Source of the DNA: Orbicella franksi
Taxonomy: Eukaryota
Direction: 5' to 3'
DNA: 64,000 bases
NCBI GenBank assembly: GCA_964199315.1
Contig: OZ116699.1
Span: forward strand, 15,128,001-15,192,000
Shown here: piece by piece, positions 6,001 to 56,340 of the stretch
Position numbering within the stretch: the stretch's first letter is position 1
Layout of the letters: each line of letters opens with the position of its first letter
Notes under the pieces: model-generated
Told to the model about the DNA's origin: nothing
Seen by the model: only the letters and a program-made list of their open reading frames with translations
Database searches by the model: none
Made by a program: the position numbers and the translations under genes

Positions 6001-9000
6001 CTTTTGTCACTTGTTCGAAGCAACGAAGAAGGCAAAATCGGTTTCCTGCAGACAGAAAACAGGGTTTGCGTGGCGCTGTCTCGCGCTAAGAAAGGGTTTT
6101 TCTGCATCGGTAACATCAGCCTTTTGGAAACTAAGAGCCAGTTGTGGAACGAAATTGTCAATGATATGCGAGAGCAAGGAAACGTTGGAGAAGCACTGAT
6201 GCTTACGTGCCAAAACCACCCGCTAAACGTGATTCACGCGTCACGTGCTGAAGACTTCAAGAAGGCACCAGAGGGAGGTTGCACTGTGCCATGTGCCACG
6301 CGACTGGAGTGCGGTCACGTGTGTGACATGGTGTGTCATCCGACAGACCCAGAGCACAAGGAATACAAGTGTAATAAGCCTTGCGCTAAGACGCTGTGCG
6401 CTCAAAAGCACAAGTGTACCAGGAGATGTTACCAGGAGTGTGGGCCTTGCATGGAGCTCGTGACAAAAATCCTTCCTCTCTGTGGCCATGCTCAGAATGT
6501 CCCTTGCTCCAAGAATCCTGTTGAAGTGAATTGCCAATCACCCTGCTCAAAGATTCTATCGTGTGGCCATCGGTGCAAGAATAGGTGCTCTGAAGAGTGC
6601 AGTGTGAAGTGCACTGCCATTACAAAGAAATACTGGCCTTGCGGACATGAAAACGAGACGGAATGTCATGTGAATCCACTACACAGTCCATGTAGGGCAC
6701 CTTGTGGTGTGACCTTAAAGTGTGAACACCCTTGTGCTGGTAAGTTCTGAAAGTGCCTTCTAACCGACAGAGGATATACACTGTTACAGGTTCCCAAATT
6801 GCAATCTTAGGATTTCGTTCACTGATAAAAATGACCGAGTAGAATATTCAGTAACAGTCCTGACCGGTTGTTTCGAGTAGTGAGACCCTTAAAGGAACTT
6901 CAGCTTCAATTTGATTTAATCATGTCTACATACTTTAAACTGTGACTTGTGTTTTCAGACAAAGGTTCCAAAGATGAATGAATGAGAGCGCAACTTTCTT
7001 TAAAATTCAGTAAATTGCTTTAAACATTTTAAAATTCTTCTTTTCGATCCCCTGTGGTATAATGTTAATTATGTTTATTGTTACCGCAATACAACATACT
7101 GTAGTTATAGTATTTATTATTGTCAGTATCTATGTATGTTACAGGAGAAACAAGATAGTAATTGTTCTTGGAACATAATTGACTGACTTGTTTGCGTCAC
7201 AAAGTGTAGAGTAAAACCATATAATTTTATTAAGTAGTTCCTAATTCCTGCTTTACATTATAGGTGACTGCTTTCGTTGTCTCCGTGGTCGAGTCCACTT
7301 GCCATGCAAGGCTGAATGTGGCCGCACTCTCTTCTGTGGTCATAGCTGCAGTGAACCGTGCACTAAAAACTGCCCTCCATGCAAGGACAAATGCGGCAAC
7401 TACTGCAAGCATAGCAAGTGCACGAAGAAATGTGGTGAGCCTTGTGATCTTTGTAACGAGAAATGCATCTGGCGTTGCGAGCATCATAAATGCACGAAAC
7501 TATGCGGGGAACTGTGTAATCGTCCACGATGTGACGAACCATGTACAAAGCAACTTACGTGCGGGCATCCTTGTATCGGTCTCTGTGGGGAAATATGCCC
7601 AAAAAAATGCCGAGAGTGTCACAAAGACGAAGTGACGGAGATATTTTTCGGAACCGAAGATGAGCCGGACGCAAGATTCGTGGAGCTGGCAGACTGCGGT
7701 CACGTGTTTGAGGTTAAAATGATGGATCAGTGGATGGACCAGGCGGAAACAACGGATGACGGGAAGCCTGCTGATGTTCAACTCAAGCTCTGCCCAAAAT
7801 GCAGGGTTCCCATCCGCACCAGTTTAAGGTACGGTAACATTATTAAGAAGATTCTGGCAGACTTCGAACGAATAAAACAAAAGATTTTACTCGGCAAAAG
7901 ACGGCGTGACCAAGAAACCGCGAGGCTCAGATTGAAGGTGGAAAAGATTGACGAGTTCCCGGACGACAAGAAAGACATCATCAAGTCGCTGGATCATAAG
8001 AATCTCACAGATGAACAAGTCAATGTGGTTGAGAACCAGATCAACTTTTTGACTTTCCTTCAGCAACTCAAGGTAGTGATAGTTAAAGGAGAAGAGGCAG
8101 AACAGGCAAGACCAAAAAGCCATGAATCAAGATTTCTGCTTCAGGAGACGAAGGAAGACCTGGAGAGTAAGGTGGAACAACTCCGAAAACGTGTGATGAG
8201 GTTTCGAGTTCGATTTAGCGACCAAGAACTTGAAGAGCTCAACGAGGAAATGTACAGAACACAGCTTCTGATCGACTTCAGAATGCTGAAGATGCAACTT
8301 GACATCCGGGGTATTAAGTTGGGAGTCACTGACACTGTCAAGGTTGATCTTCTTAAAACAGCATTGGATTCAGAGAAACCAATTGGTAAGAGGACAGAAG
8401 TCAGTAAGTTTTTAACGCGCTATAGATAACGACTTTTTACCCGAGTAGGCGTTTTCTCTCCGTTTGTTCCTGCCTGTTTTATCCCTGTGTGTTCTGAACG
8501 CGAGTTACTGGAACTGCGTAGAATCTCAGTTCTGGTGTTGTTTTTCTCTGCTTGGGCAGTAAGAATCAGGGAAAAAGGGTGCGAGATTTTCAAGGAATTT
8601 CCAAAAACGACTCTTTTATCCTCCTTCAGGAAAAGTAAAAACCAATTTATTTCGCTATTTGCGAAATGTATTCTCTTCGCTGCACTCAACGATGTGCAAG
8701 ATTGTGGATAGTTAGTGACTCAGTAATCACATTCATTTTAAATGACTACTTTGCAACATTTTCAGACAAAGATCATCGAGAGCGTTACTTTAATCGTATT
8801 AAACGTATCAGAAGAGAACAAAATCTTGATGTGAGTTACCTTGCTGTTACAAGAGAGGAGAAAGATCTGATTGTGAAGGCTATGGGGCTGACACAGGGAC
8901 ACTGGTTTAAATGTCCAAAGGGTAAGTTGAATGCTTTAGTGTGAGATGATCACGATAAAAATTCTCCTTACGAGTTTTTAGTTATTTTCTATATTGGCCC

Positions 9001-9758
9001 TTGGGAGAAAATTCTGTTGACCCTTGCACTTGCAAGCGCGCATCGAGACGTGTTTTTGTAACTTTGAGTTAACAAGAGTTGAACATTATCAGCTTGATAT
9101 TTTGTAAATATATTTATAAATGGAAAAAGTGAAACAAACAAACAAACAAACAAACTAGCTGTCATTCAAGTGCGATCAAACGAGGATGAGGGTGATCGAG
9201 AGTTGGTAAAATTCACGTAGTGCGTGAATGCAAGCCCTCCTCGATTCTCAAGAATATTTGAGCTGTTTTCAAATTCGTTGACGTAGCCGAGAGTTGTTAA
9301 GAGCCGTATGAGAGCTTGCGGGAGTAGGCTGGCAAACAAGGTATACGTTGAAAGTTTACTTTCGTAAGCAATTTAAGCTGGTAGATATTTAAAGGCATTC
9401 TCCATTAGTGTAGCCTGCGAGAGCATCCTGTGTGTGGGCTCCTTTATACGTCTGTGTTGGCAGGCTACCATCCCTATTTTCCTACCTCAGTCCTTGTTTC
9501 ATATAACTGGTTTCAATCAAGGTGAAAATTAAGCTGTTTTTCCTTTCTATTCGTAAAGGTCACATCTACTGCATCACAGAGTGTGGTGGAGCGATGGAAG
9601 AAAGCAAATGCCCGGAATGTGGCTCAAGAATTGGTGGCCATAACCATCAGCTGCGAGCTGATAATCGGCTTGCCAGTGAAATGGATGGCGCTCGATACGC
9701 TGCCTTCTCCGATATGGCTAACATCCATAACTTTGACCCGCGCGAGTTTCAGTTTTAA
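26..9758 (+). CDS. ZNFX1: ZNFX1-like SF1 RNA helicase / E3 ligase, copy 1 (5' part lies upstream of the window)
   Basis: Exons with GT-AG sites and consistent phases: 26-183, 604-861, 1460-1733, 2096-2749 (LamG), 3209-3519, 4138-4342, 4552-4952, 5773-6739, 7264-8385, 8766-8921, 9559-9758. Motifs: Walker [24 protein letters not shown], Walker [46 protein letters not shown], many CGH-type NF-X1 fingers, RING-like DCGHVF..CPKC, and RZ finger [31 protein letters not shown]. Confidence 0.95.
2096..2749 (+). CDS. In-frame cassette exon encoding a LamG/concanavalin A-like (pentraxin-fold) domain within ZNFX1 copy 1
   Basis: 654 nt, stop-free. Acceptor ttgttttctcag and donor catg|gtaagc; phase 1 at both ends, matching the flanking exons (1733 and 3209). 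The peptide [70 protein letters not shown] is a typical LamG_3-like beta-sandwich. Confidence 0.8.
3655..3806 (-). mobile_element. tRNA-derived SINE-like repeat in an intron
   Basis: The minus strand begins ggaggcagcgtggccgagtgttcagggcgccggactt (tRNA-like A-box head) and continues into a non-tRNA body ending in ccagttgggatttttaagcc. Confidence 0.55.
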
Positions 9759-13504: not shown

Positions 13505-16500
13505 ATGGACGACTGGCGAGGCCAAAGAGGCAGAGGAAGTGGGGGTGGAAGAGGCCGTGGGAGGGGCGGTGGAAGAGGCCGCGGAAGAGGGGGTAGAAGG
13601 GGTCGTGGTGGCGGCGGAACTCCGAGAAACCAACCTGAGCTTAAGCTAGGATTCGGGGAACTTCAAGCCCTTGAAACCAAAACTTCGGACGAAATAATCC
13701 TCCACTTAACATCGAGTCGATGTTTCCCAGCCACAGAGTATTTATTAAAACAGCAGTCAGTAATGGAAGATCACTGGATTGTCTTGATCGTTAGCATTGT
13801 TACGAAAGCCTGTGACTGCAGCTCTAAGGAGGACCTGTTAAAGCTACTCAACCTGTTACGAGGGTCGTCGTTTCTCAATTTGCAACTCAGACCATATTTA
13901 AACATGCTATCTGCTAACAGCTTACCTCCTTGTGACGTCGCAGTGTTTTTGAAAAATGTTGTCAAGATAATGAGCGAATTGCTCCGAAGATTCCCGAGCT
14001 GTTATGCTGATCTTCCGGTGCCCGACCTGTACTGTGGAACAAAAAGGCTGTCTGACACGAGACAGTTGGTTGATGGTGCCCTCGTCACAGAGGTAGATGA
14101 ACTAATGAAATTGAGATCCGAGAAGGCCGAGGAGCGGAAGAGAAAGGAAGATGAAGAACGTCAGAAAAGAAGGCAGCCTCGCAGAGATGGTGAGATAGAT
14201 AAGAAACATTTCCATTCTTTGTATTTCTCATCTATTCGTGCAGTGATGAAATATCTCTGTACTTTTTAGCTGAGATGAACGATGATGTTGATCCACCCGA
14301 TAGTTTCCGCTGTCTCTCTGTTGTTCCAACTCAGGAAGACATCTTGTCTGAAGGACGGCCCTTTCTCAGAAGGAACAAAATTGATGGGAGCTACAACGAT
14401 GCGGAACATTATTTGGACGTACAATTTCGACTCCTTCGTGAAGACTTTGTGCGGCCCCTCCGTGAGGGGATCGCGCAGTTGCTGGAGCGTATGGGGTCCA
14501 CTAGGATTGGTGCACTACAGTCCTTACAAGACATACGTGTGTACAGTAATGTTCGGTTGTTGTATCCTGTATGTACCTCCAACGGCATCCGCTACCGGAT
14601 CAAGTTTGACAACTCCAGACTCAGGCATGTAAGCTGGGAGAACAGCAAACGGCTCATCTTCGGCTCACTGATTTGTTTGTCCAAGGACAACTTTAATAGT
14701 TTTGTCCTTGCCACTGTGGCCGATCGAGAGCTGTGGGACATAAGCTGCGTAAGTTCTGAACATTATTCATTTTGATGAAGGTTTGTTTAGCATTTAGTGG
14801 GTGATCATTGCAGGCCCTCTCTCCCCTACAGAAGGCTTCTTTTGTTTTCTCTTGAAAGCGCTCGAGGATATGCAAGTAGTAGTAACTGGCGAACGAGCCC
14901 CAAGAGAAATCGTCAGCTACGCAGATTGATATGCAAGAAAAGGGTGGAAAGGTTGGAGAGAGGCGGCAGATTTCCTTCCTCATGACGACGGTGTGTTCCC
15001 GATCAATAGTGACATCTTTACGAAATAAGTTATACCGGTCTTTAACACGAGTGAAGAGGACCGAGTTGTTCGAAAAGCAGATTAACACTAATCCAGAGTA
15101 AAAAGTCAGCAAGGCTCAGGGCTGTGCACTACGTGTACATCTGCGTCTGCAAACGCCTGCAATTTGCTTTTGTCCACACGAGTTAATTCGACGATCTTTT
15201 ACGCATAATCAACACGCAGGTAGCCAGGTGGGTTCAACTGGACCCTGAAAAGTTAGAAACCTTGAATGAGAATCAAACTAAATCAATGTTTTTCCTGGAT
15301 TACCTTAATCCTGCTTTGAGAAATAAAGAAATTTCAAAACTTTACGTTTCTTTGCGAACGGCAAAATTTCCACTTGGAGTTCGTCTTAAATGATCACTAA
15401 GGGAGCAGTTTTGTGAATTTTCTAAACGTTTTTTTGTCTTTTCTTCTGAAAATGACAATGCAACTTTTGTTAGCTCTTACTACCCTATCTGCTTACTATG
15501 TGGGTGTAAAATAGTGGCAATTGTTCCTGTCTAGGGAATACTGAACATTCAGGTTATACGTCTATACGATCAAGTAAGACTTGAAGAAGGTGACGTGTAC
15601 CAGATGGTGGAGAGTATTGCCTTCTTTGAAACTTATCGTCATGTGCTGGAGGGCCTGAAAGAAATTGATCCAGCAGAACTGCCCTTCCAGGTGACATATC
15701 AATGCCATTTTTATAACCAATTTCCCGCAGTACATTATTCGGTCGTTTATTTACATTGAGCCTCCTTATGTGTATTGAGGTAAGAGATTGTACGAATCAA
15801 TCGTTGATGATCTACACAGTTGAAAACATTGTGATTTTGTTGGCCTTCGTATCCATCACGCGTTCCCTGAACAAAACCCTGGTGCACCATCGCACAACTA
15901 GAGCCGTTAGTCACACAGGTTAAAAGGAACAGCTAGTGTTTATTTTTCATTTTTTACTATGTATTGTGCAAAGTGCCTTTGATCATCATGCGTGAACCTT
16001 TCGCTTTACTAATTTCAACTATTATTAGAAATTGCTCTGAAATCTACTTGGATTTATAAAGAAAACGCTCCTCCAACCCTGATTTAACATCCGTATGATG
16101 TGGTTCTATCAAAACAGAAGTACATTGTAAATTGCCAGAAAGAAGTGGAACCTCCTGCCTATGTAAACCAACACGGGACCTTTGATCTGACACCCATCAT
16201 GAAGAATCCACACCGGACCCCCACTGCTAGGTATAACAAGCAAAAATTGAAGAAATTGTGATTGACTATATTGTGCTCTTGGACATGCTGTACATGTTGA
16301 CATGTCTAGCAAGATATATATCTACCTCATTCAATGCAGCACAGCTGGCGAAATATCCGTGTGTATGAGGTGGACATATATCTTACTAGACATCTTATTA
16401 GTAGCTGGTGTTTAGGCTTTCATAGTGCGGAACGAGCCGCGAAGACCATGCCGCGAGAAGAATGTCACGGCTTCGCTCACGTTCCGCGACACGAAACCCC

Positions 16501-19500
16501 ACTGAAAAAGCACACCAAAACCGCCAGCTACGCAGGTTATGTCGCTTTATATTTCTACGATTCTTACGAAATTGCTGTGATCGTTGTTATCGCTCTGGCA
16601 AAATATTGAGTGATCCTTACGACTGGCAGTTTCCATATGATATACAATAAAAAATGTCGGAGAGGACTCGGATAAAATAAGAACGCACTGCATTCTGGTA
16701 TATTTGTCATCGCAGCTATTGCTACAATCTCTCGAGAGTGGTTTCCATATGATCGCAACGTTGACTTCAGTTTCTACAATCGTTGAGGTAGATCTGAGGT
16801 TTGTCTCAGTGAACGTTATCCATGATCGCTCGTTTAAGAGTAGTTCCCATTTGCATGGCAACGATCGCTGTTTTTTTTTTCCCTCAATGATAGAAGCGAT
16901 CAAAAGGAAGCCAGCCTACGCGTTAATGGTTTTGTTCAATTCTTTCTATAGCACTGCAACACCGCTACAAAGGCTGAAACTACGGCGTTCACTCGGCTTG
17001 GGCATTAGAGACGCGGTTGGAAAAGGTAATTTTAAGTTTTAGCGTGTGTTGAATGTTATATGTCCTTCACCATTAGAGTCGATTTACTCTCAGATTAAAA
17101 GTCACAAAAATGGCCCTACTCCTAAAATACTGGGCGTTGTCCTCGAGATCACCTTCTTCAATGATTTGTTTCTGATCTCTTCAGCTAACACCGCTAACAC
17201 TTTATTTCTATCGAAGGAAAAAATATTCCACTCCTGAACCTAGCCTCCTGGCCGTCTGCGGAAGATCTGGGTCTAGATGACTCTCAGTTCAAAGCGCTTC
17301 AGATGGCGCTGACCAAAGAATTCGCTGTCATTCAAGGACCGCCGGGGACTGGAAAGACGTACATTGGTTTGAAGGTAGATTGACTCTATGGATCCTTTTT
17401 GTAACTTTGCCAGTTTTGGAGTAGCTGTTGGAGAAAGATGATCATATGTTCTTTAAAACTTGGCATGTTAGCAAAACGAAGACAGGACGAATAGTTAATA
17501 ACAAACAGATGAGTCTGCGGGAGAGAGAGAGAAAAAAATTACCATAATAATAATAATAACAATACAAAATGTTAGTAAAGAAAAAGTTTTTCACTGCCAA
17601 CGTTTTCATTCAAGGCTGGCTTTAAATCACGAATTAACAATGTTTCCTTAATTTTACAATGTATATCTGACCTACCAGTTGCTAAGATATCAAAATTGGT
17701 TATCCCCGTGGTATCATCACGTACAACATGAACGATGTAGTGAATAGACATCAAAACAAACCTAAAGACCCTATCACTACAGTTCCCAAGAGAGAAATCT
17801 TCATTGTTTTACCATTTTTAGGGTTCCAAAGTAAAGTAATTACCCGGCAACTTAAATCTTGTATTTATAAGTTTTATGGTTGTTTAACGTTAAAATAATT
17901 TTCCGAAACACCCGCCGAATTAAGTCTTTTTTCCCGTACAGGACAGGTTCAGCCGTTCTCAGATGTCTAAGGTGGTTTACAAGGCAAGCTGCTGGGACTG
18001 TGATGATTTTTATATAGGAAAAACAAAGCGTCGACTACACGATAGAAAAACTGAACATTTTAAGGCCCTTGCTAAAAGCAGTCACACCTCAGCCATTGCG
18101 GATCACGTTACTTCCACGGGTCATAATATTAAATGGGACAATTTTGATATCTTAGCAACTGGTAGGTCAGATATACATTGTAAAATTAAGGAAACATTGT
18201 TAATTCGTGATTTAAAGCCAGCCTTGAATGAAAACGTTGGCAGTGAAAAACTTTTTCTTTACTAACATTTTGTATTGTTATTATTATTATGGTATTATTT
18301 TTTCTCTCTCCCGCAGACTCATCTGTTTGTTATTAACTATTAGTCTTGTTACATATTATTAGATACCAGTCTGTTTCTTTTTCTTCGCGTTTAAATTAAG
18401 ACAGGACGAATTCTTTTCTTGCAGATTGCCAATGTTATATTGCATAACAAGGAGAAGTGGGACAGCGGTAGAGCGTTTCGACTTAACACCTATCTGTATG
18501 GCCACCGAGTCTCTTCTGGGCATCGCTCAATCCTTGTTGTCTGCTACACAAACCACGCCCTTGATCAGTTTCTGGAAGGAATCCATCAGTTCCATCCCGA
18601 CGGAATTGTGCGAGTTGGAGGGAGGAGTCAGAGTGAGACTATGAAACAGTGCAGTCTGTCGGAATTGAAACACAAAATGTATCAGGTGAGGTTCACCAGC
18701 AAATTTTGATAACGTTCACTCCAGCGATCGTACCAAACAAGAATTCACTGAGAATGGAGAAATCACGATCAATTCCTGAAAAACAGAGTCGTTAGTTCCA
18801 TTATGGATTGTAGTCCTTTACGCCATCCTTGTCCCAAGCTCTGAACATTTGGTTGGAAAGACTCTTATCGGAAAAGTTGCTAATTAGACCTGGAACAATT
18901 CAACCGGGTTACTTCTCGTTCCAGCTAACAGGAGCCTCCGTTTGCTCGCTAACTTTGTTTGCTAAAACGTGCACTCGTTTCGAAAACAAAAATTTTGTTC
19001 AACCGTCTTGAGACTGAAATGCGCTGAAGTTTTGCGACAGTGTGGTCTTCAGTTTGAGGTTCTTTTGTGTTTTAGTTTCCTTTGTATGCGTCCAAGATTA
19101 TACATATTTTCACAACTGTGTCTACATGTTGTCCATTTTATACCACGGGTACCTTTTTCACTGCTACTTTTGTTCTTTAAAACTTGCGATAGCGTTCTAA
19201 GCTGTAGTACAATCGTTGAAGGCAGCTGAAGTTGGTCGGTCGGTTAAGATAAATATTGCAATATTTCAATTTCCGTAGGGATATGCGAAATATGCACGAA
19301 AATATAGAAATAGGTTTGCTTGTTTTTCGCAACCGTGGTGGGTAATGAATTTGGTAATTTGAAGAAGACCCTCCAAAGGTAGTGGTTGTTAACCAAGAGC
19401 AACATACCATTGTTGCCCGTTTTCTTGTCTCCATATCAAGGATTCAAATCGATACGAACCAACGGATGTTTTGTAGAGCTAAAATGCTAAGTTTGATTTT

Positions 19501-22500
19501 CATCCGTTTTGAGAGTTCGGTTGTCAGTCAACCTGTATGTATCCTCCTCCCAACGCGTGTGGCACGGAACGCGCACTCACTAAAGGGCCGGATATCGAGT
19601 CTACTACAACACTTGACATGCAGCTCTCGGTAAAACTCAAAACATGCAACGCCATTTCCAGTTTTTGCTGCAGCAAAGTTTGTGAGGATTTGAAGGGAAA
19701 ATGTGCAACACTTTTGTAAGAAAACGTTGTAAAACGAATAGTGGTAAATCAAATCACAAGCCGATAAACAAGGTGGATAAAAATTATTTTTTTCTATGTA
19801 TATGTGGGGACAAGATCATAATCTCTTATGGGGGAGTAAAACGTTACTTCTCCAGTGACTGTCTTCACTTCTGGCTTGAAAGTAGAAGAGTTCTAAACTT
19901 CATAATAAGCGTTAGTTTAGGCTGAAACCGTGCGTGCGCAGTGGGTTTAATTGTTGTGAACTAAAACAAATATTAAATTGTCCACTAACCAGCCATAGCA
20001 GACATTGTTCACAAGTAACCCTATGATGACAAGGAAAATAAGCATTCGATTTTTATTTATGAAATTACCTCGGGTATTGAAAAGAGTTTTTCTGTTTCGC
20101 TAATGAAAAGTAGTTTTCAATCATTACAGCATGGGTCGATTCCTGTTTATTTCATATATATATAATAACATTTTTCCAACTGTTTGCTCGACAGGACAAA
20201 AACGTTCCCGATGACATCAGATCTGCCATTAGCGACGCTCGTGCGAAAATGGACATCACCCAGTCAAAAGTGGACGATGCATCTTACAGGTTACGGAGAT
20301 GTCGCGAAGACGTACTTGATGAAGACGAGTTGCGTGACCACGCTCGAAGCATGACGACCGCTCATTACGAGTCTTTGAAGCAGCCATTTGTTGAAATAGC
20401 TGAAAATAACGAGAGCTGTATCATGCACTGGTTGCAGCTGTCCATGGACTTGGCAAATCCCAACCAAGGAGGTAATGAACAGTTATAGATGCAGGTGAAA
20501 ATAAACGCTCCTTTGTTGTTCTTGAAGAATGATTGAACATCGCAGTTATATAAACAACTTAAGCAGTTGTGAAATTAAAGCCTGAAAAAAATTCAGGCTT
20601 TAACGGAATTCGAACCCATGACCTTAGCGATACCGGTACACTGCTCTACCAACTGAGCTATCAAGCCAACTGGGAGATGGTCACATTGTGAGTTCGAAAT
20701 ATACCCGTAGATGGTGAAGAATGCAAGTGAATATATGAAAGATCATATATTTGAACTGCGGAGAAAGGTATGAAGACATGCCGGATTGATCATCGCAGTT
20801 ATACACACTTTTTTCCGGCTTTAATTTCACAACTGCTTAATTTGTGTGTATAACTGCGATGATCAATCATGTCTTCATATCTTTCTCCGCTGTTCAATGA
20901 TGATCTTTCATATATTCACATGCATTTGTTGTTCCTGTTACTAGAACTTAGTATCCAGCCTTTCTCAGACGTAGTCATCCCTATCACAGTCGAGTCCAGG
21001 GTCCAAAAAATGAGCTGCTACATCTATCTTTCTGATCTTTGGATTTCCCGAGAAGCCGCTTGAAGAGAAATCGTTATTAGTGGAGGATGCTTTTAATATG
21101 CGAAGTCTGCATTTTGATTCTACAGTCCAACCTCCCGTAAGCGACCACCCAAAATGTCAAGCCTTGGTAGCCGTTTAAGGGAGGTGGTCGCTTACAAGAT
21201 CTTAGACCATATTGGGTCAAAATTTTGCCTTATTAGCATATGGTGACTGCAGAGACTTACCCCATGTTTGAAATGTCTTATTCATGTAAAAAGTACATTT
21301 CGTGAAAAACCCCGGTACTTCCTATTAGGAAATTTCAGTCTCTTGTACTATCGAGGAATGCGATAATGTTACAACACGTTATTATCTGCTTTCCGCTCTA
21401 TTATGTTGAGAGTAAATGTAAAATGTGTGACCATCAGAGATCACATTTAAAAATTTTAAAATGCATGCGTAAATTTTGGTGTCCCTTAGAAAGGGCGAAA
21501 ACAAATACATTAACAGGAACGCAACTTTTTTAGCGCTACTGCGCGCCCTTGGTGATTGTAGCGAAGGGGATATAACTTAAACATAGAGGAACATTGCACT
21601 AATACACAGAAGTATATACAACTGATCATGAGTGGGAATTTTTAATGAGACGGCAATAACTAATATGAATTGGTATTAATCAAGGGGGAGAAAATACGGG
21701 AGAAGAAGCGGAAGCGGAAGTGAAAGAGGAAGAAACAGCAAAGGAAGATGACGATAACGATCAGAATCCGGATGTGCGGTACGAAGCTGACGTCATTCAG
21801 GATCAAAGAATTCTAGACGATGACGACGATGATGATGATGTTGACTTTGAGCACAGTTCGAAGCCAGCTAGGAAAAAGGAGGAACTGGGCGCTGAGGATC
21901 CTTCCGATATTAGCAGGAAAAGCGAGGATGGATGGAAAATTCAGAATTTTTATCGACTGATGAAGAAGATAAAAAGGATCACGATTCACGAAGTGAGCAA
22001 AAAAGATGTCATGCCAGATGAGAGAGCAAAAATGGTAAGCAACTAAAAGCAAGGCTCTGACTATGAGAGAAAAAAGGAAAATTGCAAATAATTTATCAAC
22101 CTACCTATAGGTGATTATGAGATCTATGATTATTAAATCTATGTTAACAGAATCTCAAAATTTGAATTAGAAAAGAAATGGAAAAAGCTCTGGAATTAGG
22201 GTACGAGGAAAACTAAAGCAATTCAATTAGAGATTACTTACTCCTTTTAATATATGTGATTGACCGAACTGTATTGCCATCAATACCGTTATAACAGTTA
22301 ATTTGACCATTATTTCCCCTCACACACTGCAGGTCACGGATGTTTGGAGTTTGAGCCTTGAAGACCGCTGGAGTCTGTACCGGCGATGGCTGATGGATGT
22401 TCGCCAACACTACCGTCGCACCATATCCAACCATCAGTATGAATTTAATTGGGATGTCATGCGACTGAAGGAAGAAAAAGAAAAGTTAGACCTGAACATA

Positions 22501-25500
22501 CTTATTGGTTCCGATGTAATTGGGATGACCACGACTGGTAAGAAATTTAAAAAGTTACAATTGAAAGGAAAAAAATGAATAAAGCAACTTGACATATACT
22601 CTGATATATATTTTTTCATGTCTACATCCTTAATTGTTGTGAATTGTAATTTAGCCGGGCGTTGTAAAAATATTCTAAATAGTGCGAGATAAAAATCTGA
22701 AATCTAGTGGAAATCTTCTAATTGTACACAGCTTCAACGTTCTGTTTCGTAAACAAAAACAGTTTCCTAAGTCTTTCGGTTCTCAGGCTGTGCTGTAAAT
22801 GAAAGGCCCATCAGATTATGGCGCGACGCAGAAACATATTCTTCTTTCGCTATCGTCGAAATGGCAAGATTTAGCTCCTTACATAAAACAGGTGTTTTTT
22901 TGTTAACTTCCATCAGAAGAGTAATCAATAGCCTTTTCGCGGATATCCGTCATAATTTAGTTTTCCCTTCTTACTTATATCAAATCATTCTTTTAAATGT
23001 AGGCGCTGCCAAGTATCGCAAGCTTTTGCAACAACTGCGACCGCAAATTATGATTGTGGAAGAAGCCGCTGAAGTACTGGAGTCCCACATTGTGACATCG
23101 TTAACTCCTGGATGTCAGCACGTGATTCTGATTGGTGATCATCAACAACTCCGTCCCAATCCCACAGTCTACGACCTCGCCAAACACTACAACTTGGACG
23201 TGTCGTTATTCGAGAGAATGGTGAAGAATGGGATGCCATTTACAAGACTGCGTTTACAGCATCGCATGCGACCTGAAATCTCCAAAATGCTGGAGCACAT
23301 TTACTTTGATCCAAAGTTGGAAAATCACGAATCGGTGCTGAATTTTGACAACATTAAGGGCGTGGCTCGTAATGTATTTTTTGTGGACCATGAAGAAACT
23401 GAGGTAGGTACCCGAGCACGTATTGTCTCTATGAATAGGTTATATTTCTATTCTTGGTATTAGACTGGAACCAGCTAGCCTAGCAACTGAGACTAATGCA
23501 GGGAGTCTTTTCTAATACGAATGACAGACATTAATCTTTTTTTAAATAATATCCCCACGCACGAGCCTCCGTTGCTACAATCCTGGCCAAACAAAAGTCC
23601 TTGGGACACTTGACAAAATAATAATTCAATTTTCCTACCCCATCCCCTCCCCCCAAGCAATGTTGGAATAGTTGGTCTACTTTGGATAAATCAATCAACA
23701 TCAACATTGTACTGGGGAGAGGGAGTGGGGGTAGGTTGACACTGAGAAAGATCATATGTTGGCAAAAGTGCAAAGTGTCCCAAGGCTTTTGACCAGGATG
23801 ATAGTATGTAATTTTCGATGGTTTGACAAGCGGGCTCGTGTTCTGGTTGAGTGATATAAACTTGCGAGTGTATTTATCAACAAACAAAGGGGAGCCCTTC
23901 AACTCACGAAATCTGTTACAATTGTTTTTTCATGAGAAAATAGAACAAGCATGCCAGCTTGCTGCCTTAGTCGTGTTTCGTAATTTGCACTCAAGTAAGA
24001 CTAAGAACAAAATTCGCTCAGATAGTTTTTTTTTGTAACAAGTGGCACCTTCATATACAGTTCTGGTTGATCGTCTAGCATAGGTACTGAAAGTAAATAT
24101 TGAATAAAATTGGTAAAACAGTTCCTCTTGTTTTCGCCAACCCCTTGTTGTGTTCTTTCATTTTGGGATAACTGCTGGTAACAAACTACGTTTACTTTTT
24201 ATGAAAAACATTACAGGCAACACGAAGCCAGATTCATAACCGCTTTCTGTCGCATTACCCTACTTAAGCAATTGCCATCCCTATTTCCTTTCCTTTTTGT
24301 CTCTTAATTCTCCAATGCAGGATCGTACCCCAGAAGGAAAGAGCAGGTCAAATGAACACGAAGCTAAATTCCTGGCCGCCCTTTGTCGCTACTTCATCCT
24401 TCAGGGTTACAAAAGAAAACAAATTACAGTCTTAACAGCTTACGTTGGCCAGTTAACACAGCTCAAAAAGGAACTTGTGCCTAAAGATTTCTTTAGCGGA
24501 GTTCGAGTCTGCGCAGTGGACAATTTCCAAGGCGAAGAAAGTGACATCATTCTTCTGTCACTTGTTCGAAGTAATGAAGAAGGCAAAATCGGTTTCCTCC
24601 AGATAGAAAACCGGGTTTGCGTGGCGCTCTCACGCGCTAAGAAAGGGTTTTTCTGCATCGGAAACATCAGCCTATTGGAGGCAAAGAGTACACTGTGGAG
24701 CAAAATAATCAAAGACATGCGAGAGCGCGGGAATGTGGGAAAAGCATTAACGCTCACGTGCCAAAACCACCCGCAAAACGTGAGCGACGGGTCATGTGCT
24801 GATGACTTCAAGACTTGGGCACCAGACGGAGGCTGCACCGTGCCATGTGCCAAGCTACTCAAGTGCGGTCACGTGTGTGAGATGTTTTGTCATCCGACAG
24901 ACCCAGAGCACGAGGACTACGACTGTAAAAAGCCATGCACCAAGAAAAAGGCGCACTGCCCACTGATTCAGAAGTATTCCGGGAAATACTACCAAGCATG
25001 TGGGCCTTGTATGAAAAGGTTTAGAGAGAACCATTTTCAGGGTGGTCCTTGCTACATCTGCAAGAATCAGTCTACATCGATGTGCTCCCGTGTGTGCTTA
25101 AAAAGATGGCCTTGTGGACATGAAAACGAGACGGAATGTCACGTGGATCCACTTCTTACTCCATGTAAGGCACCTTGTGGTGTGACATTAAAGTGTGGAC
25201 ACCCTTGTGCCGGTAAGTCTTTCAGGAACACAGTCACATCTATGAACTTTCGGATCAGGGTATCGGGAGGTCAAACTCCAAGAAGTGAAGTAACAGTATA
25301 ATAATTCAATCCAGTGCTTCTCTTCTAGTTCAAATTAAAGTTTGTTTCAAAACGAGCTTGTATTCCTAGCTGTGAATAAAACCAGAAAATTTTAATCCTA
25401 CTTCGTCTCAGGGGCGGATTTGGGGAAGGGGTGGATGGGGTGGCTAGCCATCTCACTCGTGGTGCAGCGGAAATGAAACAAAACAAAAAAATGAAGATTG

Positions 25501-28189
25501 TGAATATTTGGCAGAAGTAAAGGCAATAACTCAGGACCGGTACCTCATTGTAATTTCTAGTTTGTGGCATTGCTAGTATTTCTGTTGTAACAGTTTTAAA
25601 TTGGGTTTTAATTCTCAAATTGCAACATTTTGGAGCCATGTTTCATTGTTCTGCAACCCCAAAGTACTAACCACCCTTCCCCTCTTGAAAAATACTGGAT
25701 CCGCTCTTGCGTCTTCCTTGGAAGTTGAGCTGAGACACTCTCAGCGTTCCGAGTGTTTAAGTTCACGCGTGAATGACCATCGTATTTGTAGAGATTCCTC
25801 TGTTACAAACGTTCAACTTTGAAACTTGAACGGTGATATTGAGATTAATATTGACAAGTTTAGAAGTTTCAAGTCTAACTCTGACTAAATACTGATGTGT
25901 AGCTTTTTTATGTATATTAGGTGACTGCAGTCGTTGTTGGTGTGGTCGAGTCCATGAGCCATGTGAAGCAAAGTGCGACCGTACCTTGTTTTGCGGTCAC
26001 AAGTGTAAAGGACGGTGCAACAAAACCTGCCCTCCGTGCAAGGAACACTGCGGCAACTATTGCAAACACTACAGGTGTAACAAGAAATGTGGTGAGCCTT
26101 GCGAACCTTGTAACGAAAAATGCATGTGGCAGTGTCAGCATTACACATGCACGAAATTGTGTGGAGAGCTGTGCGACCGCCCAAGATGTAACATGCCATG
26201 TACAAAGCTACTTAGGTGCAGGCATCCTTGCATCGGTCTCTGTGGGGAAGTATGCCCGAAGAAGTGCCGAGTGTGTCACAAGCAGGAGTTGACAGAGAGT
26301 TTTTTCGGCACCGAGGGCGAACCGAACGCAAGATTCGTGGAGCTGGCAGACTGCGGTCACGTGTTTGAAGTTCGAATGATGGATCAGTGGATGGAGCAGG
26401 CGGAAACAACGCATGACGGGAAGCCTGTTGACATCCAACTCAAGCTCTGCCCAAAATGCAGTGTTCCCATCCGCATCAGTTTAAGGTACGGCAACATCAT
26501 TAAGAAGATTCTGGCAGACTTCGAACGAATAAAACAAAAGATTTTACTCCGCAAAGGGCAGCGTGACCAAGAAGTAGCCAGGCTCAAATTGAAATTCCCC
26601 AAAGACCAAGATGTAATCGGGAGGTTGCTGGATCGTAAGAATCTCTCGGATGAACAAATCAACGTGATTGACAACCAAATCAGTTTGCTGTCTTTCCTTC
26701 AGACACTCAAAAATGATATAAGCTATTTTGAAGCTGATGAACGGTCTCAGGAAACGAAGGAAGACCTCCAGAGAAAAGTGGAACAACTTCGAAAACGTGT
26801 GTTACGGCTTCAGGTTCGATTCAGTGACCAAGTAATGGAAGAGCTCGGAGAAGAAATGTACAGAACACAGCTTCTGATCGACTACAGAATGCTGAAGATG
26901 CAACTTGACATCCGGGGTATTAAGCTAGGGGTCACTGACACTGTCAAGGTCGATTTTGTTAAAGAAGCATTCGATTCAGAGAACACAATTGGTAAGAACA
27001 GAAATTGAAAGGAAATTAAGATTTAGGAGCTGTTTTGTTTAAGTAACTGCCGTGAAAGGCTAGAAAAAAGGGAGTTATTGCCAACCAGAAGAATTTTCGT
27101 TTCCGCTTCTACCTGCCTAGCACAGAAATGCATCATAATGGAAGGAAAGGCAGGTTTTGGTCTCTCGCATTTAAGTTTGGATTCCGCTGTTTGAAAAAAA
27201 GTGTATTTGTACGCGCAAGCGCAAGATTTTACTCTTACAGTAGTCCTTGCAATATTGAATCGTCTGAAAAATTGGAAACTCTTGGGGCGGTTTTACTCCA
27301 GATCCACCATTAAAAAGCTACATGTGCTGTCCTAGCATTTTACTGTACTACAGGCACGCTATCTCGATATAATCACGTACTATTGGTAAGTGTAAGAAAT
27401 TTAATAGTTTTTTGTTTTGCAACATTTTCAGACAAGAAACGCAGAGAGCGATACAGGGCTCGCATTGAACGAATAAGACGTGAACAAGGCCTTCAAGAGC
27501 TTAACCATACTGTAGCAAGAGAGGAGAAAGATCTGACCGTGAAGGCCATGGGGCTGACACAGGGACACTGGTTCAAGTGTCCAAACGGTGAGTGTGACTT
27601 AAACATCAATGTGCAAAATTAAATTAATGCTTTTCATACAAATTCTCTTTGGGAAAATTTGGATAGTAACTTTTTTTGAAATGACTCGTTCGTTTTTGAC
27701 GTACCGTTCGTGCAGGAATGTCCGTTTGCCGAACTCGTCACACAGACAAGAGAGTCAGACATATTAAAAAATATCGTATTAGCCCTTGGTCCGTATACTG
27801 AAAGTTACGGATCCTCGTATTTTCCACTTCGATTTATACCCACGCGAGATCAGAAGCGCGCGTGCCGTAAATCAAGGTCCGTAACTTATAGTACGGACCT
27901 CAATCTCGGTTTGTAAGAGGCATCAATCTTCTTTATTTTGTACTCATAGCTGCATTAAAGGTCCACACTATACACTATATTTCAATCGACTGATTAGATC
28001 TTAGTTGATTTCACTGGCTTTCCAGTTATGTTCCTTTTCTCTCTGCCCCGATCTTCTCTCTTTACTCGTTTTTTGTTTCCCATCCATAAAGGTCACATCT
28101 ACTGCATCACAGAGGGTGGAGGAGCGATAGAAGAAAACAAATGCCCAGAATGTGACTCAAGAGTTGGTGGCCATAATCATCAGTCATGA
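13505..28189 (+). CDS. ZNFX1: ZNFX1-like helicase, copy 2 (full length; RZ finger altered, C-terminus truncated)
   Basis: Exons: 13505-14189, 14270-14748, 15535-15690, 16118-16230, [one phase gap unresolved], 17217-17374, 18425-18685, 20195-20471, 21685-22034, 22333-22537, 23003-23403, 24321-25212, 25921-26991, 27432-27587, 28092-28189. Several exon lengths equal those of copy 1 (158, 205, 401, 156 nt). N-terminal RGG tract, YLDVQFRLLREDFVRPLREGI, RLIFGSLICLS, MVESIAFFETYRHVLEGL, and all helicase motifs are intact. Confidence 0.88.
17490..18397 (+). mobile_element. 5'-truncated Penelope-like retroelement (GIY-YIG endonuclease end) with an inverted 3' duplication
   Basis: 17699-18265 encodes YPRGIITY..LPFLG..KVVYKASCWDCDDFYIGKTKRRLHDRKTEH..FDILATG..KETLLIRDLKPALNEN (GIY-YIG domain, with frameshifts upstream). 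17490-17698 is an inverted copy of 18139-18341. The 14-bp direct repeat aagacaggacgaat flanks the insertion (17479-17492 and 18398-18411). Confidence 0.85.
20524..20925. mobile_element. tRNA-derived SINE-like repeat in a head-to-head arrangement
   Basis: Minus strand 20596-20667 has an A box (tagctcagttggta) and a B box (ggttcgaattcc). 20726-20806 and 20841-20920 are inverted copies of each other. Confidence 0.65.
21121..21400. mobile_element. Tc1/pogo-type MITE fragment
   Basis: Begins ta-cagtccaacctcc and contains the internal inverted motif taagcgaccacc / ggtggtcgctta. The right end is not identifiable. Confidence 0.45.
23576..23803. mobile_element. MITE with TA flanks
   Basis: Inverted ends tacaatcctggccaaacaaaagtccttgggacact and agtgtcccaaggcttttgaccaggatgata. 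Confidence 0.55.
25409..25709. mobile_element. Degenerate MITE with CAGGGGCGGAT-type termini
   Basis: caggggcggatt at the left end and ggatccgctcttg at the right end form an imperfect inverted repeat. No clean TSD seen. Confidence 0.4.
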
Positions 28190-29478
28190 GCAAGAAGCCA
28201 GCTACTTGGAAAACGTCCTATGCGACGACTTCTTCTTGGCCAACAAACACAACAGTTTGTTAACACCCAAGAGACTTTCTGTGACTTTCTGTAACTAAGG
28301 TACCAGCTTAGGCATTATGACTGATCTAACAATTAATCATTTAGCAAAAACTAGCCAAATGTAAGGAACTTTTCCTCGCGCTTTAATTTGATGAAACGGG
28401 TCTTTGTTTCGATTTTTAAGTGGCGAACTGAAAAACTTGTTCTCCTGTGTGGTAGCTTTTAAAATTGCTTGTATTTTGCCTTGAAATTTTAACAGTTCTG
28501 CTTTAAAGTAAGAAATTTTATCTACATTTTTCAAGCAAGAGTCCTATCAATTGATTTTTTCGTTGCTTTTTGCAATTTTGCCGGGCTAAAATCCAAGCAG
28601 GGTCTTGAGTAGATAATGTTCTAATCGGCGTAGTTAACCGAATATTAAGCGTGTTAAGTCGTTTCATTTGTGATTTTTATCAATTGAACATAGCGAATAA
28701 CATAGATAGAGATTAAGGTTGAATTCAAGGTATTCCTTTAATTTGAAACATATTGGTTACCAGATTAGATTGCAAAGAAGCCCTGCAGGCTGGGAAGCTA
28801 AGAAGGGCTTCTCGACTAAAGTTATTCTCAACATAATACCGGATTCCGATTAAACAGTTGACGTTTTTTCACTGGAGCTCCTTCGCTTTACTGGGTGCAA
28901 CGAGAATTGTCCGTTTCTTTTTTGGATCGAAAAGTGGTGTAATTGTCCTTAAAAAACGTCCAAAACAAGACTCTTCAATGTCTGTTTTTATTTTAATTCG
29001 TATTTTCTGTATTCCTCAGAGCTTCAAAGCGAGTACCTCAAACACTAGCTAACCCATTATGTGGATGATCACTTTACACAATTACTGTGTATACTACATG
29101 AATTAACAAGAAAATATTAAACTCCTCTGTCTTCCCTCACTCCAGAAACGTCGGCGTTATTGGTTTCAAGCTTTGGTGGGCTTTTGAGTGTTAAGAAAAA
29201 AAAAAATGTGATATGTGAAAGTTGTACACCAATTTGAAAAGTTATTGTTTGTCTTCATAGAGGTAAAGGAAAGTTTTTAATTTGTTGTGACTTTTTTTTT
29301 CGGTGAACTCGTTCCAAATGTGGAGTGAGAGGGGACTAAAAAAGGAAAGATGCTGGGAACAATATTTTTCTTTCCTATCCGTGTTGTCGCGATTTGAACT
29401 TTTTTCCTCACCCACCCAAATGATCTCAAAAGCCTCCAAAACACCGTGTTTCTGGAGTGGTAAATAGTCAAAGTTCAA

Positions 29479-35017: not shown

Positions 35018-37339
35018 GACCTGTTCTAATACAGAAAAAGCAAAACATCCTAGATGCTTCAAAGTAAGAACTGTGAGCTCAGAGTCGTGATTAGTCAATA
35101 CGCAGGTCAAAACAGAATGAAAACTAAAAATCTGATTTCGCCTTCACTATATCAACATATGGTCTTCTAAACAAGTACTAGTGTTACGAATAAATAAAAT
35201 CATAAGAGAGTCTTGATCTTTCTCCAGATTCTTTCAATTAACTGCAATCAAAAGAAGTGCTTTAGCTTAAGTAACGAGAATTACTACCTTGGAAACGGAC
35301 AGATTAAATATTTTGAGAACTTGATTTCTGTTTTGAACTTTACGAACTCTGAAATCACCCCTCTCGCCTTAGTATGAGTTTTTGTCCGTGCGCGTAACTT
35401 CAGGTGATTTTAATTAGTCAATCGTGGCTCAGAATGCGCTCGCGCGTACAATTGAACTTCGCTGTTCTAATTTTGCAGATTTTCATCTTCGTTGTATTTT
35501 CTTGCCGTGTTTAACATTTTAGGCCAGCCTTGCCGCTGTTTTTGGAGTTTTGAGTTTTAAATTATTTTTAATATTGTACCTACCTACCGTTTTTAGCCAT
35601 TGTGATTCGTTGTTTATTGTATGTTCTGGATTACGTGGCTGGTTCATTAAATAGTTCGTTTATTTGGAGTCTGAGCCTACAACTCACTGAATACAATTTC
35701 CAACGTTACAATTTCGATGTTTTTTTTTAAGTTTCCAACTTGTTAGGTGCTGGCGGAATTCTTTTTTAAGGTGCTGGGCAATTACATTCGGGCTCCAATT
35801 TCAACTAAAATGTTAACTCTTTTAACTGAACTGAACTGTCGCTATCTGCCATCAAATTTTTAAAATTTACGTTCAGAAAAGTTCCGTAAGGAAAATTAAC
35901 GTTTGGAGCTTGGAGCAAATGGGCAAGAATGAAACGAATAAAATTATATCAAATTAAATTGATCTTACCTTTCACTTGAATAACAATCCGTAGTTTCGAA
36001 TTTGAAGTTTGGCTCGTTGAGTTAGTCACAGCGAAAATGAGTTAAACTAAGCTTGCTAGCCTTGTTATTATCAGTGTTTTGCATAAGTATGCGATAAACC
36101 ACTTGCGTCAGTAGATAAAACAAAAGTATTTAACAAAAAAATGTTAATCTAGATGAATGAAGTTAAATGCTATCTACTTGCCTAGTTTTGACGAAAACGT
36201 ACATTTATAATTTATTTTCAGTCTCGGTTTCCCACGTGGCTTTTAAAAGTGTAAAAATTCTTTAAGACTCTTTAATAAGGAAACTCTTCGAAACAATTCA
36301 TCGACAAGCGTTTTTCGCAATTTTCTATGACTTTGGAAATCACAGAGGTTCCCTAGTGAAGTTTTTAATAACTATCCAAATCAAGCTTTTTGTTCCTTCT
36401 GTAAGGTGACACAAAAGTTTTTCCGCATTCTGCGCGTTTGAAATAACTTGTGACGAACAAGAATTTTTCACTCCCTTTTTTTTTTGTTCGCGGCGCGAGT
36501 TACACAGAGGTACCCTAGTTAGCATAACAAATGAGACCACATAACAATATTCATTGTGGACAAGATTAAGTTATAATAAACAAAACAAAACGTAACAATA
36601 AACAAGTGTATAAGTAGAGTGTGTCGAATGATACGTTAATTAAACTCTTTCTTCTCAATTCATTTAGCTTTCCTGATTATTATATAAACCTAGCATCTTT
36701 GAAGCCATATTCGTCATATCAATATATGTGTTATTTCAAGGTCCTAAGCACATCGTTCTAGAGTTTGTTCCTGCTGTTAATTAATAGTCTAATTTGCGAA
36801 GATCAACCACAGTCGATTTCTTTTTTACTTTCATATATATAATGTTAAGCCCAGGGAGTTTTAAACAAACCTCTTTCTTTAAATTTACACCGGCTAAGCT
36901 CCTTTGTCCATTGTACCACGTGCTGGTATAGTTACCTTTAGCACAAAAGAGTGTTTTCCGCATTCAGACGAAAATAATTCTGGGCACCCTGAGGAAAATA
37001 ATACTTGCAAAAAGAACACCCTTGTACGCTTACTTATCTGATGTCTCTATCTTTTCAGTTTTTTATACAGTGAAACTGACCCCATTAAGTTTAAACACAC
37101 GAGCCCCTCGCTAGTGTCCTCTGTTGTCGCTTATAATTATAATTAAGCCAAGGTATTTTTCAGTACAGAAATGAGGGATAGGGTTTGGAACTTAGCGACG
37201 GCTAGTGTACGTTTAGTTAATATGGAGTTTAATAATTGAAACGCGGGGTGGCTAAAAAGCTAAAGGGCGCTAAAGGATGAGTATACTGTAGGGTGCTGGG
37301 CAAGGAATCTTTAAACGACCAAGCCATTTTGTTGATGCA

Positions 37340-37524
37340 TGTAGAAAACGTATTCAAACGACACTTTCGTAGATAAAGACTCTATTCAAAGACAAAAAAA
37401 CTCCAGAATACAATTCAAGAACAACGACTTCGCATTAGTTTTGCATTCGTTCCCTTTCAGTTCAGTGTTCGAGGGGGGTCAAATCGTGTAAGTCACGTGA
37501 CAAGCTCGGTCCCAGTTTTCAACA
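37340..37524 (-). repeat. 3' LTR
   Basis: Direct repeat of 43208-43392. A polypurine tract (minus strand gggggagtg, 37525-37533) abuts it. Confidence 0.97.
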
Positions 37525-43205: not shown

Positions 43206-43207
43206 AA

Positions 43208-43392
43208 TGTAGAAAACGTATTCAAACGACACTTTCGTAGATGAAGACTCTATTCAAAGACAAAAAAACTCCAGAATACAATTCAAGAACAACGACTTCG
43301 CATTAGTTTTGCATTCGTTCCCTTTCAGTTCAGTGTTCGAGGGGGGTCAAATCGTGTAAGTCACGTGACAAGCTCGGTCCCAGTTTTCAACA
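43208..43392 (-). repeat. 5' LTR
   Basis: Direct repeat of 37340-37524, 184/185 identical by eye. Confidence 0.97.
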
Positions 43393-54817: not shown

Positions 54818-56340
54818 TTTACTGTAAAATGTTCACATCTTCTCGTGCGAATTGTAAACTTTAAACGTTTCGGATGGTAATGTTTGATTCCAAATTTGAT
54901 TTTTACAAAGTACTAGGGGTTTAAGAAAGTTATTCTCTGATTTTTTTTCGGAGTAAGAAAGAAATTGGCATTTCAGTTAATTTTTTTTTTGCACGAGGAG
55001 ATGTTTACATGACTTTTGGCGTAAAATTCTAAGGAAGCCATTTTGAATATTTTGCCGAAAATGTTGTCAGGGGAAACTCTGTGCAAATTTCTTCAAATTT
55101 TCCCGCCAAAAGTCTTAGTATATATAAGGCAAAATTTTTCTTCACACCTTTTAGTTTAATTTAACTGATTTTCAATTAATTAATTAAATTAACTAACCAA
55201 TTATTGCAAAACAATAAAATGTGATTAATTAAAAACAACAAGTGGTGGTTTCAATTGTGTACATTTAATTGCTGCTATAGCATTGCTGCTGTTGCTAATT
55301 TCTGCTATTTTTATTGACTTGCTGCTAAAGTAGCAATTCAATACTTAAATAAAAAAAGACATTAAAAATATCACAGCAAATAGAAGTCAATTACACACGC
55401 GCCTTCAATGTAACTTTTATTGGCTTTTCAACAATACAATTAAAATTAATTACAAAAAATTTGAATAAGTAAACAAAATAAAAAAATGCGCTTTTAAAAG
55501 GGCCTGGAAACTAGTCAAAATGTAGGCTATCTCTTTTACTACTTTTTGACTATGTAGGGTTGCCAAAAAGAAAAAAAATTCTGCGCTTTTGAACAGAGTC
55601 TAGCCAGAAACCAAACATATACTTTGACTTTTGATGGGATAAATCCTGCTACATATTAAAAGATTTTTTCCACCAAAAGACTTAGTATAAATTTGACTCA
55701 AAAGCCATACACCATTTAAAATTGCAGACTTTTTTTTTCAAGAACAATTTTACTGCCAAAAGACTTTTCGATTATTTTATTGACCCTTTTAAAAGCGCGA
55801 CCTTTCCATCAATCCTATCCTCCTTGGAAACTGGACAGATTTTGCTAAAATTTGTGAAAAAAATTCTAGACAATTGAACAGTACATTCCATGTGTTGTTT
55901 GAGAACTAAATTCTGATAGTCGAATTTTGTTTCACGGGTTTTGTGAAGAAGCTAAGAAGACTTCCAGGCTTGAAATATCTTATCGCAAAAAAATTAATCG
56001 AGATAAAGTAATATCTGCTACCTTGCATTTAAAGAGAAAACTTGTAATTGAATCCACAGCTTGCTCGAAAAACGACTCGATATTAGTAACCCGCGAAATA
56101 GTCACTAGATAATTTGCAATAGCTCCGGTAATTCCTTTGGACTCTTGAGTTATGTGAAAAACAATTTTGATGAATGAAAACTAATCGTGATAAATCTAAA
56201 TCTACCTCATTTATGATACATGATCCACTGATGAAACATCTAAATGAATTAGTTTGGTTTCCTTTGCTTCTTTCTCCATGTTAATGTTGATGTCCTGGTG
56301 ATGTACATTCAGCATTTGAGATGGCAGCCTGAAAGAAATA

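Follow-up and report, generated by a model that had tools for sequence, protein, structure and literature searches.

Two tandem ZNFX1 genes

The stretch of DNA analysed here (the window) comprises 64,000 nucleotides of the coral Orbicella franksi (GenBank assembly GCA_964199315.1, contig OZ116699.1, positions 15,128,001 to 15,192,000 of the forward strand) and holds two plus-strand genes in tandem, of which copy 1 is interrupted by the start of the window and copy 2 begins at about position 13508. Both are paralogues of ZNFX1, an RNA helicase and ubiquitin ligase of innate immunity, having a superfamily 1 (SF1) helicase, Cys-rich fingers, a Miz or Z-RING domain and an RZ finger; Pfam detects AAA_11, AAA_12 and the RZ-type zinc finger in each, and in database searches both fall among proteins bearing the name NFX1-type zinc finger-containing protein 1 (ZNFX1), with full-length matches reaching E values as low as 1e-83. 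The subject of this report is the RZ finger of copy 2, for which the original prediction, made from the letters of the window, had claimed loss of the catalytic cysteine and a premature stop, leaving an active helicase without E3 ubiquitin ligase activity.

The helicase motifs are retained in copy 2, as had been predicted: a Walker A motif (GPPGTGKT) and a motif II (VEEAAE, 23056-23073) are found, and the helicase part is conserved. Its Cys-rich repeats, a candidate NFX1-type stalk, align to named ZNFX1 proteins; the exon that carries them matches no Pfam family at an E value of 0.01. The upstream exons have open frames, and Montipora ZNFX1-like proteins used as tblastn queries match collinearly over their residues 60-1629. 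Scores on the ZnF_RZ-type profile (PF20173) are 61.9 bits for copy 1 and 40.1 bits for copy 2 (cut-off 27), the match of copy 2 spanning only positions 17-47 of the 54 in the profile.

Lesions in the RZ finger of copy 2

In human ZNFX1, zinc is bound by C1849, H1853, C1869 and C1872 of the RZ finger, with C1860 as the nucleophile and H1881 as the base; in RNF213 the zinc ligands are C4505, H4509, C4525 and C4528, the nucleophile is C4516 and the general base is H4537 (PMC11549300). The finger of copy 1 has the spacing C-x3-H-x6-C-x8-C-x2-C-x8-H, which is that of the published numbering of both proteins, and in dolphin ZNFX1 (P0464, 1918 residues) every one of them stands at its human number. 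At the nucleophile position copy 1 has TGT (Cys, 9582-9584), and the last exon of copy 2 reads G/HIYCITE-G-GGAIEENKCPECDSRVGGHNHQS up to its stop (the slash marks the exon boundary), with GGT (Gly) at the corresponding codon. Because the spacing of copy 1 is that of ZNFX1 and RNF213, the Gly of copy 2 falls exactly on the transthiolation nucleophile; the original prediction was right on this point and on the codons and coordinates of TGT, GGT and TGA. An intron interrupts the finger after KCPxG, which leaves the first zinc Cys in the preceding exon (KCPNG/H) and makes the zinc His the first complete codon of the last one. Copy 2 and all its orthologues retain the four zinc ligands (KC..GH, CPEC), and copy 2 also keeps the general-base His (H1881 / H4537), which is the second His of GGHNH; both had been reported as retained, and both are in the sequence.

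Aligned with the TGA of copy 2 is a CGA in copy 1, after which 33 more codons follow up to a terminal FQF; a CGA-to-TGA truncation, as proposed, fits this alignment. The copy 2 protein ends two residues past the base His and lacks the conserved C-terminal extension. Nucleotide similarity between the copies falls off at 28183, and beyond the stop a remnant of the tail is legible in another frame (FF-LANKHN vs FSDMANIHN) because of a net 8-base deletion. A further substitution lies upstream in the ubiquitin-binding helix, where the position of human I1835 is ACC (Thr, 27536-27538) in copy 2 and Ile or Val in 109/109 homologues and in the nine other fingers of the genome. In human ZNFX1, I1835 is on the ubiquitin-binding helix, and its change to Ala abolishes the activity of the isolated RZ domain (bioRxiv 10.1101/2025.10.14.682297, 10.1101/2025.09.05.674436).

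The residue lost from copy 2 is one of the most constant in the family. The nucleophile Cys is present in 110/110 aligned complete RZ domains, in 109/109 full-length ZNFX1 homologues with the motif, in 83/84 representatives of the strict spacing and in all nine other RZ fingers of the genome (497 Mb assembly); no RZ domain with a complete tail among those surveyed lacks it. The base His and the helix Ile/Val are likewise invariant among complete RZ domains, and the segment past the base His contains an invariant Asn, an invariant Asp and a near-invariant EMDG motif in the 110 complete domains. An AlphaFold2 model of the domain of the copy 1 type was built from P0203, a transcript-type protein identical to copy 1 except in its last two residues; block means of the predicted local distance difference test (pLDDT) were 92-94 over residues 61-80 and fell to 79 over 81-90, the end of copy 2 corresponding to residue 69. 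The model thus predicts order for the first ~20 of the ~33 lost residues, and the truncation takes away a stretch that looks structured. A Foldseek search of the PDB with the model of RZ finger and tail gave nothing at E <= 0.001, the best rows being zinc ribbons and RING domains at E 0.3-3, and a PDB sequence search returned no ZNFX1 chain and only weak matches to RNF213 (E 0.18), in which the Cys aligns with mouse C4462.

The genome has eight further RZ fingers, seven of them clustered at 1.75-1.83 Mb on contig C15 of the assembly, G000 (L002-L005, L008-L010), and one on C13 (L007). Two sequence types are represented, lying on opposite strands; every one of these fingers has the nucleophile Cys, and the intron at KCPxG interrupts none of them. 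The type of L008-L010 has a divergent tail (MPAFEMNNTRTRF). The intron position at KCPxG is itself widespread, and a number of predicted ZNFX1-like proteins (P0007, P0009, P0016, P0018, P0030, P0040, P0052, P0062, P0075, P0078 and P0115) stop at KCPxG plus a few odd residues. Since such models read into the intron and skip the last exon, the annotated absence of an RZ finger is often an artefact; in practice, many ZNFX1 models in the databases that look RZ-less merely omit the last exon.

Independent samples and expression

Contigs from four public runs were aligned to 22900-28800, giving RNA evidence at the contig level. The DNA contig X7, from an independent study, covers 27569-28561 with 0 differences, and the RNA contigs X15, X16 and X17, from three studies, run from 28091 to beyond 28700 with 0-1 differences, none within the finger. 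The runs that carry both the Gly and the TGA are labelled as three organisms plus a coral metagenome. Nothing was found in favour of a sequencing or assembly error, or of a rare allele; with the letters identical across the independent DNA run and the RNA runs of three studies, error is refuted and this explanation as a whole has next to no probability left.

RNA contigs with GT..AG joints (23401 to 24319, 25211 to 25920, 26990 to 27431 and 27586 to 28091) come from three studies, and copy 2 is therefore transcribed and spliced; a lack of expression, which the original prediction had listed as a ground for its refutation, is not what is observed. The 3' untranslated region (UTR) extends past 28800 in the RNA contigs, and these contigs contain no joint by which the last exon would be spliced out beyond the TGA. 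RNA contigs of copy 1, when aligned to the copy 2 stretch, diverge at 28183 into the tail of copy 1.

Copy 2 as a maintained gene

Genomic contigs carrying related genes were reached by way of exon-sized proteins in coral metagenome assemblies; L015, L017, L018 and L019 are too short to contain the last exon; P0180 was not traced to any contig. The related contigs align to copy 2 through introns and the 3' flank, and copy 1 aligns in exons only. In a tree of exon E12, related genes and copy 2 form one clade (support 99) apart from the clade of copy 1. The ZNFX1-like model P0389 of Montipora foliosa, which ends before the finger, was considered as an orthologue of copy 2 and rejected, being equidistant to both copies and placed in another clade, and it was left out of the timing.

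The frame stays open through E10-E14 in the window and in L011, L012 and L013, and all exon boundaries have AG/GT, over ~870 codons in four taxa. Orthologues differ at a ratio of nonsynonymous to synonymous divergence (dN/dS) of 0.24-0.35, the helicase part alone giving 0.11-0.24. Given the open frames, the kept splice sites and this ratio, copy 2 is not a pseudogene. One could still picture a decaying gene that is transcribed by chance, for its tail is truncated, catalytic residues are lost, ~27 residues of the Cys-rich fingers in E11 are lost or scrambled and there is no LamG exon. Such decay is very hard to reconcile with frames and splice sites that stay intact at a synonymous divergence (dS) of 0.2-0.35, with purifying selection of the strength given above, with an E11 whose length is identical between copy 2 and its orthologues, and with spliced RNA in three studies, and we regard this alternative as largely refuted.

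History of the truncation

We infer the order of events from the related genes. The sequence CAG-TCA/TCT-TGA is found in six of them, five from the copy 2 clade (L011, L012, L013, L014 and L016) and one, L020, from a sister lineage. The five members of the clade that reach the last exon have identical deletions in the dead tail, and L020 has the TGA of copy 2 with a tail that is still like that of copy 1 and free of the later indels. Since L020 carries the TGA without the later tail deletions, these genes fit a history that began with a CGA>TGA nonsense change. As dS among orthologues is 0.2-0.35, compared with ~0.5 between copy 1 and copy 2, the truncation is old and, judging from the codons now described, appears to predate the loss of the Cys.

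The nucleophile codon is TGT in L012, L013, L014 and L016, AGT (Ser) in L011 and L021, and GGT in the window only. The change from Cys to Gly thus appears to be later than the truncation and specific to the lineage of the window, which reverses the order implied by the original prediction, namely loss of the Cys followed by truncation: the TGA is ancient and common to other corals. Loss of the Cys has also recurred among the related coral genes, the Ser codons of L011 and L021 being separate events, since L013, the nearest relative of L011, has TGT.

Other catalytic features have decayed in other ways. In L014, Gln replaces the base His and three residues are deleted; two residues between the nucleophile and the CxxC are missing from L011 and L013; in L011 and L020, two-base insertions end the frame before GGHNH, so that the base His is lost; L021, from another sister lineage, stops directly after the CxxC; and most members have a two-residue insertion between helix and finger. 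The four zinc ligands survive in all of these genes. The divergence of the RZ region relative to that of exon E12 is higher in the clade, with a median ratio of 0.86, than in pairs of corals with complete RZ fingers at similar distance, where the ratio is 0.19-0.37.

These changes bear on whether the finger of copy 2 might still transthiolate through another nucleophile, the obvious candidate being the Cys four residues upstream (YC). That residue is present in both copies, as the original prediction had cautioned, and in all copy 2 orthologues, and the base His is retained in the coral of the window; the position is nevertheless not a conserved one, being A, L or T in the other RZ fingers of the genome and V in dolphin ZNFX1. 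Moreover, the ordered, invariant tail is gone, the I1835 equivalent is Thr, and the spacing indels and losses of the base His in orthologues argue against selection on catalysis. We consider a substitute nucleophile very improbable.

The second ligase domain and the function of copy 2

The claim that copy 2 is an E3-dead protein is a different matter. ZNFX1 has a second ligase element, Miz or Z-RING, that contacts the E2 (the ubiquitin-conjugating enzyme) via F1575; C1860 has been mapped with an activity-based probe, and the human mutants C1860A/S retain activity in vitro and are intermediate in antiviral phenotype, and a construct from which the RZ finger is missing is active as well (bioRxiv 10.1101/2025.10.14.682297, 10.1101/2025.09.05.674436). 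The Phe equivalent to human F1575 is present in copy 2 (26304-26306), and the Miz region with this Phe is conserved in the copy 2 clade. Because the Miz/Z-RING domain is kept and human C1860A/S, ligase-active through that domain, retains activity, the description of copy 2 as E3-dead is unsupported. From its sequence, copy 2 is most likely a helicase with RING-type ligase activity only.

Our preferred reading, to which we assign a probability of about 0.65, is that copy 2 is an expressed and selectively maintained ZNFX1 paralogue whose RZ finger no longer transthiolates, and which keeps its helicase and its Miz/Z-RING domain and would act in the RING-like mode only. A nonsense change, for which CGA>TGA fits, would have ended the protein two residues past the general-base His and removed ~33 conserved residues; the catalytic features of the finger would then have eroded differently among coral lineages; and in the coral of the window the nucleophile Cys would have become Gly, with no loss of the zinc ligands, of the helicase or of the Miz/Z-RING domain that binds the E2. 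The resulting protein would presumably still have helicase activity, would bind RNA and ubiquitin-charged E2 (E2~ubiquitin), and would transfer ubiquitin in one step, as a RING does.

Several observations weigh against this reading or some part of it. The Cys is kept in four orthologues long after the truncation, and the truncated finger may have been active in them for a time or may be so still, in which case the truncation alone would not be sufficient to end catalysis. The finger itself is partly conserved, with a mean identity among orthologues of 0.90 as compared with 0.83 past the stop, variable sites at codon positions one to three numbering 5, 4 and 11 (small numbers, and not significant), and a dN/dS of about 0.2-0.4 in most pairs, which hints that it may retain some function; 3/4 of the finger indels are in frame, which is suggestive only. 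In the Miz domain, the linchpin residue is Ser in copy 2 (26460-26462), Arg in copy 1 (7803-7805) and Gln in human; it is Q1623 in dolphin ZNFX1 P0464 (human numbering) and R, K, N, S or T in coral paralogues. Finally, the contigs of the orthologues are metagenome-derived, with L011 and L013 from one sample, and the upstream half of the copy 2 gene model was placed by similarity.

Retention of the zinc scaffold in a dead finger, together with the tandem arrangement of two genes that are both transcribed, could also be taken to mean that copy 2 is a decoy or inhibitor, as the original prediction proposed, or a helper, and that it co-assembles with an RZ-competent ZNFX1 such as copy 1, either damping its ligase output or borrowing its RZ finger in trans. 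We think this improbable, because a pure decoy would have no use for the helicase and Miz domains, which are under purifying selection in copy 2, and because co-assembly is not a given for a protein that has no LamG exon and an incomplete Cys-rich stalk. A broader proposal, likewise improbable, is that there is a stony-coral subfamily of ZNFX1 in which one old nonsense mutation turned off the transthiolation arm and in which the remnant of the zinc finger is kept for a non-catalytic job, for example to dock, within mixed polymers, onto RZ-competent paralogues or ubiquitin. If this were true, the tandem pair would consist of an active partner and a modulator, and the two E3 modes of ZNFX1 would have been separated by nature.

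Features of the window

The coordinates on which the above is based are collected in Table 1.

Table 1. Features of the two ZNFX1 genes and the basis on which each was placed.
Feature	Positions	Strand	Basis or remark
Copy 2, upstream exons	13508..22536	+	approximate, placed by similarity; start MDDWRGQ... ~13508; Walker A 17336-17359; without LamG exon
Copy 2, E10 (23003-23403), E11 (24321-25212), E12 (25921-26991)	23003..26991	+	RNA joints, translation, Pfam AAA_11/AAA_12, dN/dS
Copy 2, Miz / Z-RING-like E2-binding domain	26298..26474	+	alignment to dolphin ZNFX1 P0464; kept across copy 2 clade
Copy 2, penultimate exon: ubiquitin-binding helix and first zinc Cys (27578-27580)	27432..27587	+	
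Copy 2, last coding exon: RZ finger from zinc His to stop	28092..28189	+	RNA joint; PF20173
Copy 2, within last exon: zinc His; CxxC; base His	28094-28096; 28142-28153; 28178-28180		
Copy 2, GGT (Gly) at RZ nucleophile position	28115..28117	+	equals human ZNFX1 C1860, RNF213 C4516
Copy 2, TGA stop, two codons past general-base His	28187..28189	+	common to related genes of other corals
Copy 2, remnant of RZ tail, decayed and untranslated	28190..28295	+	net 8-base deletion frameshift and further indels
Copy 1, penultimate exon: helix Ile (ATT, 8870-8872) and first zinc Cys	8766..8921	+	
Copy 1, last exon: complete RZ finger and 33-codon conserved tail; stop TAA 9756-9758	9559..9758	+	

The two genes differ in other exons as well. 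Copy 1 has a LamG-like exon (2096-2749) with no counterpart between the flanking exons of copy 2 (20485-21744), and Montipora isoforms that carry Pfam PF13385 match copy 1 only. In E11 of copy 2 (24945-25107, compared with 6391-6634 in copy 1), ~27 residues of the Cys-rich NFX1-type fingers are gone and the rest has broken Cys spacing, a loss from the stalk that is old, as E11 has the same length in the orthologues. An intron of copy 2 contains a 217-base inverted repeat of 96% identity (17482-17698, 18139-18349), which brackets an open frame (17924-18262) with a GIY-YIG-like motif (YKASCWDCDDFYIGKT) and resembles a fragment of a Penelope-type retroelement. Further along the window are direct repeats of 186 bases (37339-37524 / 43207-43392; 99.5% identity, 5.9 kb apart) that resemble long terminal repeats, and an inverted repeat of ~550 bases with 97% identity (56339-56883 / 58655-59204).

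Relation to known systems and significance

Human ZNFX1 has the domain order, the RZ spacing and the F1575 position of copy 2, which can be regarded as a natural counterpart of the C1860A/S mutants and their retained RING-like activity. It differs from copy 2 in having the last 33 residues, Ile at position 1835 and a complete Cys-rich stalk, and in being the product of a single-copy gene rather than one of several coral paralogues. C. elegans ZNFX-1 and the truncations found in human patients (E1727fs*11 and V1788fs*6), like copy 2, keep helicase and Miz and have no functional RZ finger; in these proteins, however, the finger is wholly absent, whereas copy 2 retains a zinc-binding remnant that appears mildly constrained. 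Unlike the alleles of the patients, which do harm, copy 2 is maintained beside RZ-complete paralogues. The RZ finger of RNF213 belongs to the same fold family (PF20173), and its nucleophile (mouse C4462 / human C4516) aligns with the Gly of copy 2; in RNF213, unlike ZNFX1, the RZ finger is internal and the sole E3 route, the E2 is bound by a separate C-terminal domain, and loss of the Cys abolishes activity.

Degenerate RZ fingers also occur among ZNFX1-like proteins in the databases, namely P0385 (Cys to Phe), P0091 (Ser) and P0224, as well as P0050, P0077, P0102, P0123, P0136, P0142 and P0147, which have zinc knuckles only. As in copy 2, their zinc ligands are kept, the catalytic Cys or His is lost and the C-terminus is short. 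These proteins come from lineages unrelated to copy 2 and are known from the protein level, so that some may be artefacts of gene models. P0385 (ENA, 1481 residues), with Phe at the nucleophile and no GG-x-N-H base motif, is an independent loss outside the copy 2 clade. Our search of the literature found no paper on an RZ-defective ZNFX1 in cnidarians.

Copy 2 does not represent a new kind of system: within an expanded family of immune genes, one paralogue has lost catalytic residues. Its interest lies in the two-mode ligase recently described for ZNFX1, with a RING-like mode (Miz/Z-RING) and a thioester-based mode (RZ) whose weight in vivo is debated. The coral subfamily amounts to a natural experiment on this question, in which one truncation of the RZ finger was followed by at least three independent decays of catalytic residues, with the helicase and the E2-binding domain remaining under purifying selection. 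Because the RZ arm decayed while those two parts stayed selected, this history is an argument that a selectable function can rest on the RING-like mode alone. It further suggests that the conserved residues past the base His are part of the functional RZ unit, and the members of the copy 2 clade are ready-made variants for biochemical comparison with their intact neighbour.

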